Assembly: GCA_002104945.1 (NCBI GenBank) | Contig: MCFH01000004.1 | Location: forward strand, 1,364,001 to 1,428,000 | Direction of reading: 5' to 3' | Length of the DNA stretch: 64,000 nucleotides | Source of the DNA: Piromyces finnis finn | Taxonomy: Eukaryota; Fungi; Neocallimastigomycota | Shown here: positions 72 to 60,299 of the stretch, piece after piece | Layout: each line of letters opens with the position of its first letter | How positions within the stretch are numbered: position 1 is the stretch's first letter | Program-made: the position numbers and the translations under genes | The notes under the pieces: generated by a model | What the model was told of the DNA's origin: nothing | Databases searched by the model: none | The model's input: only the letters and a program-made list of their open reading frames with translations

Positions 72-3000
72 ATTTTCTGTATTTCTATTTATATAGCATT
101 TTTATTCTTATTCATAATACCGGCTATTATTTGTGAAATCCCAAGTAATAACGAGGTAAAAAAAAATATATATATTAAATAAGAATAATGTAATAATAAA
201 AAAATTTTGTTTTAAAACTATTCTTATTTAATTATTTTAGGCTGATTTAAAAGTTCAAAATGAAGAAGAAGTAAATATTATGAAAAACTATTAATTTTTT
301 TATTTTTTCTCATTCTTTATTAAAAAACACACACACACATTTATATGAATGTTTCAATTTATATTAATATATTGTTTTTATTATAAATCAGGAATTAAAG
401 TTTAATAATGAAAATATTAATGCTGATAATTCTTTATCCGGCGAAGAAGGTGTACATGATAATAATGATAATATAAATGATTCTATTAAGGAAGAAAAAG
501 TAGAAAATGACATTGTTGATAACAGCGATTCACCAAAAGAAGAAAGTGATAAGATAAAGATAAACAATAAACAGAAAAGTGTAAGTAGTTTTTTATGAAT
601 GATTGAAAAATTGTTATTATAATAGATCAATAGTTGTAATATTCTTATGATATGTAATTTTGTATCTTATATGTATGATGTATTAATGAAATACTTATAA
701 TTTATTCGCAAATTTAAAAAATATTTTTAAGTCAAAGGATGAAAATGAAGGTATTTTAAAATTCTATTTTCTATTTGTAAAAATATAATGAATATAAGAA
801 TGAATACAATTACTAATCAATATAAATATTAATTAATACATAATCAATACATTCTATTCTATACAATTTCTTAATATTTATATCCAGGCTATAAATACTA
901 TGACAAAGCTATGGAGATTCTTGAGACTGTACCAGATAAAGTATATAATAAAAAACCACAAAGAACTTTTGTAGGTATTTTAACTAATGCCTTCAAGAAA
1001 ATTACTGGAAAACCAGAATTTAAATACTATGAAAAGCCAAAAATTAAGGATAGATATTTTGATTTAGATGAAGACATCAGTGATGACGAGCAAGATAATG
1101 ATAAAAAATTAAAGAAAGCTTTGAATTTATTAGAAAAAGCTGGTCTTGATTATAATTTAGAAGAAGCTTTAGAACAATTAGTTGAAATCAATTTCGTAAT
1201 TATCCTTTTTTTTTTTTTTAAATATCTAATATATATATTTTTCCTTTTTTACAATATAATATCAAGATATATTACATAATCGATGATTATTCCTTGATAA
1301 TATATATGATGTTAATATATTATTTTTTTTATTATACTATTAATGAATTCCAATAATAAAACATACAATCCTATCCTATTATTTCATTTTATGTACTTGA
1401 TAGTTTGCAACCCATGGTGCTGTAAGAAATATGCCAGCTGCTTTCAAATACATTAATATTTTATGTACAGAATTTGGAAATGCTGATGCTCTCTATAAAT
1501 TAGGTTTAATATATTCTACTGGTTTAGGTGGTGTTGTTGACAGAGATCAAGCAAAGGTAATATTTTTATAAAAAACTTTATTAAATAATGTGTTATTAAA
1601 GAGAATAAAAATGAACATGATCTTGGCATAATTTTAAAAAATATTAATTTGGTTTTTTTTTTTTTTTTTTTTTTTTTAATGAAATTTAGGCTTTATTATA
1701 TTATACTTTCTCAGCATTAAATGGTAATAAGGAAGCTGAAATGGTTTTAGGTTACAGATATATGCATGGTATTGGTACATCAAGAAATTGTGAAGAAGCT
1801 GTCTGGTATTATTCAAAGATTTCCAAGAGAGGTAGTTTTTTTTTTTTTTTTTTTTTTTAAATAAGAATAATTATAATAATAAATTTATTTTGATATTATG
1901 TATACCTATATACATTTTCTTTAATCGATGAATATTTAATATTTATAATATATAATTTCACAAAATCTAATCCATAAATATGTAGTCATGGATTATTTAG
2001 AATCAGGTCCACCACTTGGTCGTGTTCAACCACAACCAAAACTTAGACTTTCAGATGAAGATGGTGGTATTTATGGTCTTGGTGCAAGTGGTTCTGGTGA
2101 TAAAAAAAGTGAAGTTGAAGATGTTAAACAAAGTTATCCACCAAATGATGTTGTTCAATTCTACAAGTATTCCGCTGATGGTGACAATGGTGATGCTATT
2201 GCTCAAGTATGTAGTATTGCAATATCTTTTTATTATTAAATTTTCTATTCTATCTCGGTTTCATTAACATTTTTAATCTATCTATTTTATGCTATTCATA
2301 GCATACTTTAGGTAGAATTTTCTATTACGGTATTCCAGGTATTCCAGGTATTCCAGTTGATTACGAAAAGGCTTTCTACTATTTCTTAAAGGCTGCTAAA
2401 CAATTACCAAAAACTCCATTAGTTTTAAATGAATTATCAGATGAACAAAAGAAATATTATAATGCTGTTTCCCAATCTGCTGGTTTTGTTGGTTATATGT
2501 ACTGGCGTGGTGAAGGTGTTGAACAAGATATGAAATTAGCCAGAGAATGGTTAGAAAAGGGTTATCATCACGGTGATGCTTATTCTACTAATTATTTAGG
2601 TGTCATGAATCGTGATGGTGTTGCTGGCTTTGAAGTTAATACTAAGGAAGCCTCAAGACTTTTCTCTGATGCTGCTTCAAAAGAAAATACTGAAGCTCAA
2701 ATCAATTTTGGTGATATGTTACTTGAAACTGGTAAAAGAGAAAATCAAAAGCATGCTTTAAAATACTATCAATTAGCTGCTACTATGGGTAATGTTAAAG
2801 GTACTTATCGTTTAGGTAAATTATACCTTGAAGGTTTAGGTGTTATACCACATTGTGAATTTGCTGTTACCTTTTTAAAGAGTGTTTGTGAAAGAGCTAA
2901 TTTTGAAGAAAAGTTTATGGATGAAGCCTATAAAGCTTACAAGAGTGGTGATTTCGATACTGCTATTTTAAAGTATCTTTATGTTGCAGAACAAGGTTAT

Positions 3001-49650: not shown

Positions 49651-52600
49651 TTTATACTAATTGTCTCATTTATACCTATAACAATACTCATTTAGTAATA
49701 ATAGGATGTTAGTATTAAAAAAGAATTACATCATTTTTTAATAAAACTTTATTTTTCAAATTAAAATTTTCAATATCCACTCCATCCATCACAAAGTATA
49801 CTGTAATATATTATAAAGGATCACAAATTCAATGGTTCCTATATATAAACAGTAGTATGGATTTTTCCATTTCAACCTGGGTCCATCAATGATATAAAAA
49901 TGACATAATAGTAATTATGAATAATTTAATAAAATTTTATCTTTCATTTTATTAATAAATAAGGTTGGTTTAATACGAAAAAAAATAAAGTCCACCATCA
50001 TTTGTTTCAAAATAATAAAATAAATCGGAAATTAATTTATTATAATAATAGATAATATCAGATTATCCTTGAATATCATTGCATTAAACATTATTTTATT
50101 ATAATTTAAAGTTCATAGGTCATTTATTTTTAATGTGTAAAATTAAATTTAATTTAATTCCTATAGACTATTAATATAATGAAATATAATGAAAATTAGA
50201 CATCATCTTACATCACAAACTTTTTTTTATTATTATTATTATTAAAAAATAATACTCCATTATATATATTATATATTCTATGGTATCTAAAAAAGTCATG
50301 TCTTCAACCGGAAAGAGGTAACGGGAACTAGTGACAACAACTAGATTCTCTCTGAATTGCATACTCGAGTGGATAAAATTTTTTATTCAAAACTAAAAAA
50401 AAAATAAAGGAATGGCCATGATGAAAGAAAAAAAATTTAAAGTTTTTTTAAAAAAAATGAACAATACATTTAAAATATATCATCATGATACAATAGAAAT
50501 ATATTTTATATATATAGATAGCCATCGATAAACACCATAAAATTAAATATAATTAATAAAAATATTAATATTTCCAAAATTGTCATTACTCCTTTTTTTT
50601 TTTTTTGTAATTTATTTTATTTTACGAAATTATCTTTATCCTATATAATAATAATTAACTTTATTTTGAATGGAATAATACTAGATTTGGGTGACAGTAT
50701 ATATTTTAAGGTATTCTTTTACATAAAAAAATAATTTATATTTTCTAACTGTTCATTGGTAGAATGAAATAATTTTATATATGGAGCGAGTAAAAATGAA
50801 TAAAAAAAAAGTTTGAGATTTTTTAATGATGCTATTGATTTCAATTAAAAAATGATTATTATTTCATTAGATTGTAATATATAGGATTTAATAAATATTT
50901 TAATTGATTAATATATCTCAAATTGTAATGATTTCATCTATTACATATATAATTTATATATAATTTATATATAATTTTATATATAATATTATATATAATT
51001 CTATTGAGAAAACAATATATTTATTAAAAAAGAAATTAGTTTTTTTTTTATTTTCCTTGTGAACAAATAAAAAAAATTTGATCCAATAAATGGAAAATAA
51101 ATAAATTGAAATCGATGATGTCTTTGATACAATAAAAAATAATGTAATTCATAAATTTTGAAAAATGATCCATAATCATCCATAGTTTGTATACAATACA
51201 ACTATTGATACCTACATTTAAAATACATGATAAAAGTGGGGTAGTAAAGGTCAAAGTGTAGTTGGAAAAAAAAAAAAAGAAATTTCAATCCTATTTTTAT
51301 TTTTATTCCATAATAAAAGAAAGGGAGTAGATGAGTGAATGGGGGAAAAAATCAAAATAAATAAATAATAAACTCTGATTTCTTTTAAATAGCATTCCAT
51401 AGTTTATTTTTTTAAAAAAAAAATTCTTGATTTTCTTTTTTTCATATTAAATTTATATTAACTTATTATTATACTGGAAACTTTATTCCATGAATAATAA
51501 TTAATAATTCACCAAAAAAGATAGTTTAAAAGAACTGATTGACCAATGTTATAAAATAATTATAAAAGTAGAATCCTATTGTTTAAAAAAAACTTTGAAC
51601 TATTTTATTCCTTTAGTTATTCTTTTTTTTTTTTAATCAAGAATAATAATAGAAATTAATGGTTATTGCTTTTGCTTCCTTCCTGTATTCTTTTAAAAGG
51701 GAATAAAAATTTTTCTTTGAAAAAAATTTTTAATTTTTATAATAAATAAACTTTTTTTAAAAAAAAACTAATTTTGACAAAAAATTTTAGTCCAAAACTT
51801 TATTTATTATTATTTTTTAATTTTTATCTTTAGTGTAAAGATTATTCATAAATTAAAAAATAATTTTGTATCTTTGAAAAATTGTTTTTTTTTTTTCTTA
51901 GTATTGAATAAATAATAAGTATTACTTTTTAAAAAAAAAAAACATCGAAAGACTTTATAAAAAATTGGGTTAATAGACTAGGGAATGTATCAATGGCATC
52001 ACTTGCATAATGCAAACTAGGGACATTTTATTATAAAAAATGCTTTTTTTTTTTTTTTTTTTTTTTTTTTGATTGTTCAATTATAAAATTTTACTATCAA
52101 TATTCCATACATAAATGAAAATTATAACATTTTCATAAAAATTAAACTAATAATAAAGAACGAAAAAAAAAAATTAATTTAAAATAAACTATTCTTTATA
52201 CTGATATAGTTTATTTCCTATTTTCTACTTTTTTTGGAAAGTTATTATTGAAAATAATGGCTCTTACTACGGATTAGTAAGAACTATCTTTTTAGATATT
52301 AAATAAAATAGAGCTCTTCTCATAATTATTTATTTTTTTTTTACTATTCCTTACCTACACTACATACCACCACAACAACAACTGAAAAAATAAATTTAAA
52401 AAACTTTAATAATTATTAAAATTTAAATTTATATTGAATGGATTGAATATATATATTATTATATATTAATATATTATATTGTTTATAGTTGTTAATATAT
52501 TAAATTAATAATACTTTATGAAATGTCAACAATTGAAAGATAAAAAAAAACAGTTCAAAGTTTTTACCTTTTAATCATGTTTGAGTAAGAAAAAAAAAAA

Positions 52601-58927: not shown

Positions 58928-60299
58928 CTAATTTCCCCTAATCTTAATGTTATATCCGTTACCGTTTCTTCTGTAGAAGAAACCTCTTGGTGGATCAATT
59001 AAATATACTGGAACTTCTTCAAGACCAGCTTCACGGTAAACCCATAATCTTTTATTGGCGGTAGTGTAATAATTACCGGTGGATTTATCAATACAAACCT
59101 TAATTGGTGGGAAATCTTCAATTTTAATTTCACCATTTCTTAATAATCTCATAGTTCTACGAATAGATCTACCATCTCTAAAGCAGTTATCAATACTTTC
59201 TTGTGAATATAAAATATCTTTTGGATCAAGATAAAGAATTCTATCTTCAGTAAGTTCAATTGGTTCACCATTTAAATAAACAGTAGAAGCAGTATCAGAA
59301 ACCAATGATTCATTATCATCTTCAATATCTAATGATTCAGTAAATGAATCTTCATGATGCCAATTGGAAGTACCATCTTCCCATAAAACAAAGTATGACC
59401 AGTCATTTGCTGGTGATAACCATAATTTCTTTGCACCATCATCACGTCTTTCTAATTCATGATCTAAAGTGGATGGTAAACCATACCAACCATATCTACC
59501 ATCAGTAAATTTAGCATACCATGATCCGTCACCAGAAAGAGCAACTTCTTCAAGATATATATCTTTTTCACTATAATATTTATAGAAACAAAAATAGACG
59601 ATTCTGTTAGTTTTATCTTTACTCTTTAAAATTTTTACATTTTCATTTATAAAAAATAACCCCGACACTATATTTTCTAATATTGATATTTATTTTTTTT
59701 TATAAAATACAATTCTCTTAATCTATTCTATTTAATATAAATTTTAAAAATGAAAAGGTACATACGCTTGACGTTCAATAATTTTTTTATGTAAAAGATA
59801 TGGAATACCATTCCATGCAGTTTCTTTGTTACTAAACATAATAAGGTAAGACTTATCTTGACCAAAAATAACCTTTAAAACACCACGGTGAGCCTTGTCT
59901 TGTAATAAAAGATCCATTTCATCACTGCAAACACTCCAACCAGTAGAGCCATCAGCAAAACGAACGAACCAATCGTCATTTGGTGATAAACTTAAAAATA
60001 CAACTTCAGGTAAAGATCTTTTTTTTAAAATATATATATATATACAAAATATATAAAATTAATAAAAACTGATAAACAATTTAAATAATTTATTGTTATT
60101 ATTATTATTTTAATATATTGTATTTATATATCCTTTGTTTATCGATTTTAATCTTTAGAAATATTTACTTTTGTCTACCGTTTAATTTGTTATGTAAAGA
60201 ATGTGGTAAATTGTTCCATGATTGCCTACCATCACCCCACTTAATATACCAAGCGTTATCACTACCAAAAGCAATAAATTCAACTTCACTTACAGTCAT
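58928..60299 (-). CDS. uncharacterised 341-aa protein: five Trp-rich repeats plus acidic linker plus C-terminal ParB/sulfiredoxin-like domain
   Basis: Exons 60299-60169, 60017-59766 and 59570-58928 join in frame with GT-AG introns (1026 nt). C-terminal LDPKDILYSQESIDNCFRDGRSI..LRNGEI..FPPIKV..YYTTANKRLWVYREAG. Domain call is from motif recognition. Confidence 0.85.

Follow-up and report, generated by a model that had tools for sequence, protein, structure and literature searches.

A predicted Tox-ParBL1 domain fused to a probable propeller-like repeat module in gut fungi

The window analysed here is a stretch of 64,000 nucleotides from the gut fungus Piromyces finnis (contig MCFH01000004.1, positions 1,364,001 to 1,428,000), and the gene under study lies on its minus strand between positions 60299 and 58928. 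It encodes a protein of 341 amino acids in which an array of five repeats is joined, through a short linker, to a C-terminal domain assigned to the Tox-ParBL1 family, a family otherwise found in bacterial toxins. Our analysis makes it probable that this protein is an old, domesticated eukaryotic fusion of repeats and ParBL1 domain, kept under very strong purifying selection and acting as a nucleotide-dependent enzyme or switch in a housekeeping process, and that it is neither a recent import nor a weapon. This reading draws on the occurrence of the same fusion in distant eukaryotes, on the separation of the fused domains from the bacterial ones in a phylogenetic tree and on the near identity of the orthologues across genera.

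Gene model and the C-terminal domain

The P. finnis hypothetical protein ORX58639.1 (P0007) is letter-identical to a minus-strand model of three exons with lengths of 131, 252 and 643 nt, which add up to 1026 nt or 341 codons plus stop (Table 1). The two introns are located at borders between repeat units and split the codons of K44 and A128. The exons were translated one by one, and full-length analyses were done on the deposited protein. An earlier note, made from the sequence alone, had drawn this three-exon gene and had remarked that the list of open reading frames (ORFs) misses its first two exons. All three exon translations are indeed 100% identical to ORX58639.1, and the only entry of useful length in the list is a 246-aa ORF over exon 3, accompanied by short pieces of exons 1 and 2.

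Splicing of the gene is a strong inference from public assemblies. A word-indexed search with exon 3 returned a single cluster of 341-aa proteins, made up of ORX58639.1 and hypothetical proteins of Neocallimastix californiae, N. lanati, Anaeromyces robustus and Piromyces sp. E2. Uninterrupted 341-aa ORFs are called on dozens of contigs of 1.0-2.4 kb (IMG and Logan assemblies), and callers that do not splice can yield such proteins only from cDNA-like contigs. Unspliced contigs give shorter products: a 44-aa ORF from 55 public contigs (P0009) is exon 1 running into intron 1, two ORFs from other genera (P0010 and P0011) are exon 2 running into intron 2, and a further one from other genera (P0014) consists of the tail of intron 2 and exon 3. 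Because P0010, P0011 and P0014 break at intron 2, the position of this intron is the same in other genera. The comparison of unspliced with uninterrupted ORFs thus indicates that the exons are joined, as the earlier note had supposed, and strongly implies that the locus is a genuine, spliced and expressed P. finnis gene.

Table 1. Position of the gene, its exons and introns, and the predicted parts of its product in the window (pLDDT, predicted local distance difference test; AF2, AlphaFold2; VIA, structure search described in the text).
Feature	Position	Strand	Residues and remarks
Exon 1	60169..60299	-	aa 1-43 and two bases of K44; repeat 1; ATG at 60299, donor GTAAAT at 60168; translation 100% identical to P0007 residues 1-43
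Intron 1	60018..60168	-	151 nt; GT..AG, phase 2; in-frame TAA just past the donor
Exon 2	59766..60017	-	aa 44-128; repeats 2 and 3; acceptor AAG, donor GTATGT; translation 100% identical to P0007 residues 45-127
Intron 2	59571..59765	-	195 nt; GT..AG, phase 2
Exon 3	58928..59570	-	aa 128-341 and TAG stop; repeats 4-5, linker and ParBL1; acceptor TTATAG; translation 100% identical to P0007 residues 129-341
Five-repeat beta-beta-beta-alpha module (predicted)	59318..60299, introns included	-	aa 1-212; units 1-44, 45-88, 89-128, 129-172, 173-212; AF2 pLDDT >90
Acidic linker, predicted disordered	59270..59317	-	aa 213-228; pLDDT <50 at 214-221; length varies among homologues
Tox-ParBL1 domain (predicted ParB/Srx fold)	58931..59269	-	aa 229-341; profile matches, VIA Z 8.9-6.7, ESM Atlas neighbours
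N-terminal signature YSQESI	59192..59209	-	aa 249-254; Gln251, Ser253 and Ile254 are family-conserved
Helix-cap signature A299-N300-K301-R302-L303	59045..59059	-	start of helix 300-308, after strand 295-297 (AF2)

The C-terminal domain escapes the common domain libraries. With each exon and the C-terminal 114 aa as queries, neither Pfam nor NCBIfam returned a usable hit, PF02195 did not match the domain at E<=10, and a phmmer search of exon 3 against the PDB gave matches at chance level only. A profile was built from two fungal domains, those of the window gene and of its paralogue, and was searched against 1.84 billion representatives. It recovered 1,697 relatives at E<=1e-3 and 129 at E<=1e-10, which share the pattern Y.DP..I.YTQ.SIS..F.DG.S...L..G......P.I.V....G...SLDNRRL..FK.AG. 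The C-terminus of the window protein, which carries the pattern quoted in the earlier note, reads LDPKDILYSQESI..F.DG.S...PPIKV...ANKRL...AG. In many of the profile hits the domain stands directly after a Hint module; PT-HINT is present in 10 of the 146 hits included in a Pfam census, together with RHS repeats, PT-VENN, PT-TG and DUF637 in the census, and the PT-HINT-linked proteins P0031 and P0036 match the profile at about 1e-14. ESM Atlas neighbours of residues 225-341, with template modelling (TM) scores of 0.73-0.82, comprise PT-HINT, RHS, PT-VENN and MafB clusters as well as small mollusc and cnidarian proteins. Identity of the window domain to the bacterial domains is about 30-35%. The architectures of these relatives bear out the earlier proposal that the domain is of the kind found at the tips of polymorphic toxins.

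A family of this description was defined by Zhang et al. 2012 (PMC3482391) as Tox-ParBL1, with NGK_2271 of Neisseria gonorrhoeae as type protein. They predicted a ParB fold with a conserved N-terminal Ser and an [NT][RT][RT] motif, whose conserved arginine was considered equivalent to that of DGHHR; the N-terminal Ser/Thr is absent from classical ParB. Delivery was attributed to MafB and to type V, VI and VII secretion systems (T5SS, T6SS, T7SS), and members were listed from several eukaryotic groups including fungi, where only Ascomycota were represented. Sequence comparison places the window domain in this Pfam-less family, which it resembles in its similarity to PT-HINT, RHS, VENN and MafB tips, in its N-terminal Ser and, with the departure described below, in its Asn-Arg motif at the start of a helix. 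The window gene differs from the toxins in that it has neither a secretion or pre-toxin module nor an adjacent immunity gene, is fused to a propeller-like module and is ultra-conserved instead of polymorphic. Its novelty is architectural, together with a sequence variant, as the family is already known to have eukaryotic members.

Modelling is consistent with this assignment. A structure search independent of Foldseek (VIA; 48,161 chains) returned, over residues ~231-340, only ParB/Srx-fold proteins among the top matches. Seven of them lead the list: Arabidopsis sulfiredoxin (6ky4; Z 8.9, root-mean-square deviation 3.6, 87 of 89 residues aligned), Atu1540 (2hwj; Z 8.8), the serine kinase SerK (5x0b; Z 7.8), human Srx (1yzs; Z 7.5), KorB (8qa8; Z 7.0), SbnI (5ujd; Z 6.7) and PadC (6ryk; Z 6.7). 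The ParB/Srx match anticipated in the earlier note was thus obtained with seven members of the superfamily. These Z values are only moderately above the background stated for the tool, and conviction comes from the unanimity of the fold family. A domain-only profile of 46 sequences found no match among PDB sequences, from which it follows that no ParBL1 structure has been solved.

Column conservation was assessed across 149 other domains of the family. In the N-terminal signature, positions 251, 253 and 254 are Q, S and I in 77%, 67% and 73% of them; S250 aligns with T or S of the family and S253 with its conserved Ser, so that the N-terminal Ser/Thr is present in the window protein, where Q251, S253, F258 and P282 are all retained. 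At the helix cap, the family pentad is D-N-R-R-L (87%, 98%, 97%, 97% and 99%, respectively), and it is preserved in full in the chytrid and Acrasis proteins described below. However, the window gene and all gut-fungal orthologues read A-N-K-R-L. With regard to the [NT][RT][RT] motif, N300 and R302 are kept, but the middle position is K301 and the preceding Asp is replaced by A299, which is a conservative but real departure. ParB proteins carry a phosphate-binding arginine box at the helix-cap position that matches A299-L303. The sequence suggests that D299A and R301K, both fixed in the lineage, attenuate or alter catalysis in comparison with the toxins.

The window domain can be compared with other ParB-fold proteins. 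Sulfiredoxin, a eukaryotic, intracellular, ATP-using enzyme, gives the best structural match (6ky4, with 1yzs further down the list), but has a Cys-His-Arg catalytic motif at the helix cap where the window domain has A-N-K-R, and identity is only 12-18% without any match at the sequence level. A sulfiredoxin assignment was therefore considered and rejected on account of the A-N-K-R-L helix cap, the missing PF02195 match and a similarity confined to fold; the domain is not a vertically inherited sulfiredoxin. An independent origin of sulfiredoxin and Tox-ParBL1 has also been argued by Zhang et al. 2012 (PMC3482391). The CTP-binding domains of ParB, KorB and PadC, as well as SerK, SbnI and Atu1540, share the fold (Z 8.8-6.7), and they too have a basic motif of the phosphate-binding kind where the helix after the central strand pair begins, whereas the window domain has no helix-turn-helix, dimerisation domain, GERRxRA box or Pfam match. 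The only experimentally studied ParB-fold domain that serves as a toxin tip is ToxB (bioRxiv 10.64898/2026.05.05.722872), the C-terminal toxin of a CdiA protein (CdiA-CT), an ATP-binding ATPase that shows no binding to DNA. The same preprint describes Boxes I-III of the ParB fold. ToxB is detected by PF02195 and keeps Boxes I-III, whereas PF02195 misses the window domain, which falls in the separate ParBL1 family.

The five-repeat N-terminal module

The model of the full-length protein was obtained with AlphaFold2 from a 68-row alignment of natural homologues and has a mean pLDDT of 90.6, while a single-sequence model of exon 3 reached a pLDDT of 43 and was discarded. In the former, residues 1-212 form five strand-strand-strand-helix units. 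These units are significantly alike in pairwise comparison (39% identity and E 6e-9 for repeats 1 and 4; E 8e-8 for repeats 1 and 3), although they have diverged from one another to 25-39% identity. The repeat array of the earlier note is thus supported by both sequence similarity and the five-unit model.

Structural matches of the repeats are beta-propellers with Z of 5-7.8, including RCC1-like, tectonin, five-bladed tachylectin-2 and GH43 proteins. In a Foldseek search of the full model against the PDB, propellers dominate at TM 0.2-0.37, and this search was uninformative on the C-terminal domain. A profile of 24 proteins of the same architecture aligns in phase with strands a-c of WD40 proteins, with E-values of 5e-25 for 2ymu and of 1e-4 to 1e-5 for WDR5, SKI8 and LST8. 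Repeat periodicity inflates the value for 2ymu, as five repeats in phase do not count as independent, and Pfam WD40 matches no member, neither the window protein nor those in the census of 146 profile hits. For these reasons we call the module WD40-like, which is unproven. Its repeats of about 41 aa, the in-phase profile match and the Z values recall WD40, RCC1-like and tectonin propellers; in contrast, WD40 blades are four-stranded, whereas each of the five units here has three predicted strands and a helix. As modelled, residues 1-212 are probably a divergent WD40-like propeller of five blades that belongs to no Pfam family.

The repeat has a life of its own outside the fusion. ESM Atlas look-alikes (TM 0.72-0.82) include ascomycete and Bacteroidota proteins of about 200 aa in which the module stands alone, and forms fused to RING, SH3, BACON, MORN, Sel1 and beta-lactamase domains. 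A protein of the green alga Parachlorella kessleri (P0169, 473 aa) consists solely of this repeat, with at most 44% identity to the fungal units and with the helix motif LHNKLNGRQKSLP present; it lacks a ParBL1 domain, so that the repeat family also occurs independently of the fusion. Within the P. finnis genome, the repeat is confined to the window gene and its paralogue.

Distribution, conservation and competing readings

The repeat module accompanies the domain in 27 of the 150 best domain hits. Named carriers of this fusion are the chytrids Quaeritorhiza haematococci and Nowakowskiella sp. and the heterolobosean amoeba Acrasis kona, which has two such genes. A tree was computed from 52 rows of known type and 111 columns, an earlier tree of 153 rows having been left unused as too poorly resolved. 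One branch divides all 23 bacterial toxin-type domains from all 27 repeat-fused domains, with an ultrafast bootstrap (UFboot) of 88 and a Shimodaira-Hasegawa-like approximate likelihood ratio (SH-aLRT) of 61, and a single change between the two types is needed in 92% of the bootstrap trees. The gut-fungal clade is not placed among Bacillota.

These results bear on the origin of the gene, for which the earlier note had pointed to bacterial gene acquisition by Neocallimastigomycota. Gut fungi are known for such acquisitions, and close bacterial members of the family do occur in gut Clostridia, among them a sheep-colon metagenome-assembled genome (MAG) and a dockerin-bearing RHS toxin, which speaks for a recent gain of a toxin cassette from rumen bacteria with subsequent fusion to a fungal repeat gene. 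However, the same fusion is found in chytrids that do not live in the gut and in Acrasis, and the gut-fungal clade groups with the repeat-fused eukaryotic domains, apart from the bacterial tips. The gene has two spliceosomal introns and a composition native to its host, and its domain is as distant from the bacterial ones as stated above. The proposal of a recent horizontal gain is largely refuted by these observations and we hold it to be highly improbable.

Conservation within the gut fungi is extreme. Ten orthologues of 341 aa from four genera show 5-16 differences from the window protein, which corresponds to an identity of 95.3-98.5%; 22 of the 341 sites vary among them, and none of these is a signature position of the family. 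Neither polymorphism nor rapid turnover of the toxin tip is seen among these sequences. An identity of 95-98% is probably unusually high for these gut-fungal genera in general, and the paralogue provides an internal control, being 60-82% identical between species, N. californiae included. This paralogue is the only one in the P. finnis genome (56.46 Mb in 232 contigs) and is located on contig C135 (768440-771736; in the extracted locus L002, an exon at 50..~846, an intron and an exon at ~932..1848). It combines the same repeats with a ParBL1 domain that is 27% identical to that of the window gene, and in its clade the helix-cap signature reads D-N-Y-W-L, with both arginines lost. The paralogue evolves much faster and has a long, low-complexity N-terminus rich in Asn and Ser. 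A shared intron position between the two genes was considered and rejected: the single intron of the paralogue lies 11 nt from the site of the first intron of the window gene and is in phase 0, whereas the latter intron is in phase 2.

The earlier note had proposed a repeat sensor coupled to an effector, possibly a module for non-self recognition or antimicrobial action. In such a protein, the repeats would sense non-self or a microbe and release a toxic ParB-type nuclease or NTPase inside the cell, in allorecognition, programmed cell death or antimicrobial defence. Homology of the domain to bona fide toxin warheads speaks for it, as does a classical ParB-fold toxin of contact-dependent inhibition (CDI) that kills plant cells too, and repeat-plus-effector layouts like the present one are common in immunity-like proteins of fungi. 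A gene that is nearly single-copy (one divergent paralogue, no repeat expansion), unsecreted, almost identical across four genera and altered in its signature to A-N-K-R-L is, however, the opposite of what is expected from a conflict or allorecognition gene. Moreover, the repeats are mutually divergent and not of the near-identical, hypervariable type, no NACHT, NB-ARC or other switch domain was found in the Pfam scan, and no partner gene lies nearby. Fungal NLR and HET-type proteins resemble the window protein in combining a repeat array with an effector-like domain in one intracellular chain, but are characterised by NACHT/NB-ARC, hypervariable repeats, paralogue expansion and polymorphism, and the window gene has none of the four. 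An NLR-like reading was rejected, the 341 aa being fully taken up by five repeats, linker and ParBL1 with no NACHT/NB-ARC. A sensor-effector role is thus not borne out, and appears to us distinctly unlikely.

A further possibility is that the domain is a catalytically dead pseudoenzyme, with ParBL1 left as a surface for binding or scaffolding in a propeller-based adaptor protein. Replacement of the family Asp and Arg at positions 299 and 301 in all gut-fungal orthologues fits with this, and so does the loss of both arginines in the paralogue. Against it, none of the orthologues has changed N300, R302, L303, S253, Q251, F258 or P282, Lys is a conservative substitute for a phosphate-binding Arg, and the chytrid and Acrasis orthologues keep D-N-R-R-L. 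We therefore regard a dead enzyme as unlikely.

The reading of an old, domesticated fusion with a housekeeping role has points to answer as well, and the following weigh against it. The ParB/Srx fold of the window domain comes from a predicted model with middling to good Z values, and its place in Tox-ParBL1 follows from the published description and a MafB-cluster neighbour in the ESM Atlas. No experimental work on a characterised Tox-ParBL1 member was found in the searchable literature. The phylogenetic split has moderate support, being drawn from 111 columns only with a key branch of moderate strength, and most of the environmental matches carry no taxon names. Homology to toxins could leave room for a cell-killing role, and D299A together with R301K could make the domain catalytically dead.

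For the favoured domesticated fusion, the following mechanism can be proposed. The propeller would dock a specific partner or substrate, and the ParBL1 domain would use the N300-K301-R302 helix cap, with Ser253 and Gln251, to bind a nucleotide or some other phosphorylated ligand. Such binding would be analogous to the use of CTP or ATP by ParB-fold proteins. The protein might then act as an NTP-dependent switch, a phosphotransferase or a nucleic-acid-directed enzyme in a housekeeping process. From its sequence, the product is predicted to be cytosolic or otherwise intracellular. We put forward, as a tentative extension, that zoosporic fungi and some amoebae could depend on it throughout their lineages as an essential housekeeping regulator, a former bacterial toxin warhead having become a nucleotide-dependent switch or phosphotransferase that the propeller directs to a conserved cellular target. 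Fusions of ParBL1 with MORC-type ATPases in other organisms hint at chromatin or nucleic acid as this target.

Tox-ParBL1 is a large family: the 1,697 relatives are cluster representatives at 50% identity, and the family is found in bacterial warfare toxins, including those of the Neisseria MafB type, and scattered in eukaryotes. A near-invariant member in gut fungi would mean that a ParB-like toxin fold also serves the cell in a non-toxic way that is under strong selection. The case would be a clean one of toxin-domain domestication, as against the recent rumen-derived transfers known from gut fungi, and the protein offers a safe, soluble, single-gene handle on the ligand and chemistry of Tox-ParBL1. 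If the tentative role as housekeeping regulator is true, the function of a Tox-ParBL1 domain could be worked out in a tractable eukaryotic system for the first time. As a second module without annotation, the propeller-like domain of five beta-beta-beta-alpha repeats is defined here.

Genomic surroundings and ParBL1 domains elsewhere

The region between positions 52000 and 64000 of the window is gene-poor and very rich in A and T, with a GC content of 7.5-22% per 400-nt window. The exons stand out with 27-31% GC from flanks of 12-20%, and the composition is native to the host genome. No other credible ORF of at least 60 aa occurs within ~4-6 kb on either side of the gene, and no plausible cognate immunity gene was found over the same distance. 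The absence of a signal peptide noted earlier is confirmed, in that no hydrophobic signal is present at the N-terminus, where the AF2 model places the opening strand of the repeat module at residues 6-11. Pfam likewise matched no secretion or trafficking domain and no pre-toxin module (HINT, VENN, TG) in the window protein.

Named bacterial loci were retrieved with an alignment of the tight Hint-type clade. A locus of an uncultured Clostridiales MAG (L007, 3428-6590) contains PT-HINT with the domain, a small ORF and then a second PT-HINT cassette. The two tandem cassettes have different tips and each is followed by a small ORF without Pfam match (132 and 156 aa), a layout typical of an orphan toxin-immunity array. 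In Streptomyces herbicida, a 1,368-aa RHS protein with ParBL1 at its end is followed by a DUF7660 gene (L013, 4236-4556), and in Gracilibacillus sp. D59 a 584-aa protein with ParBL1 at its end is followed by another (L011, 4310-4531). DUF7660 (PF24693) matches these genes with E-values of 2e-21 and 9e-17, respectively, immediately downstream of two unrelated ParBL1-tipped toxins, which makes it a candidate immunity family for Tox-ParBL1. A search of the fungal genome for DUF7660 gave no match, but the control genomes were equally silent.

Other architectures extend the range of the domain. A 1006-aa protein (P0080) carries RHS, a type I dockerin, PT-HINT and ParBL1, and is a predicted cellulosome-anchored toxin. 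A eukaryotic protein of 938 aa from an EukProt transcriptome (P0053) combines a MORC-type GHKL ATPase (PF13589) with ParBL1, and one of 417 aa (P0129) combines a ubiquitin-like domain, Trp-rich repeats and ParBL1; by their sequences, these two fusions hint at nuclear or regulatory contexts and prove nothing. The tunicate Styela clava has a protein (P0023, XP_077973299.1, 389 aa) with two tandem N-terminal ParBL1 domains, which falls among the bacterial tips in the tree on a long branch and may represent a separate acquisition.

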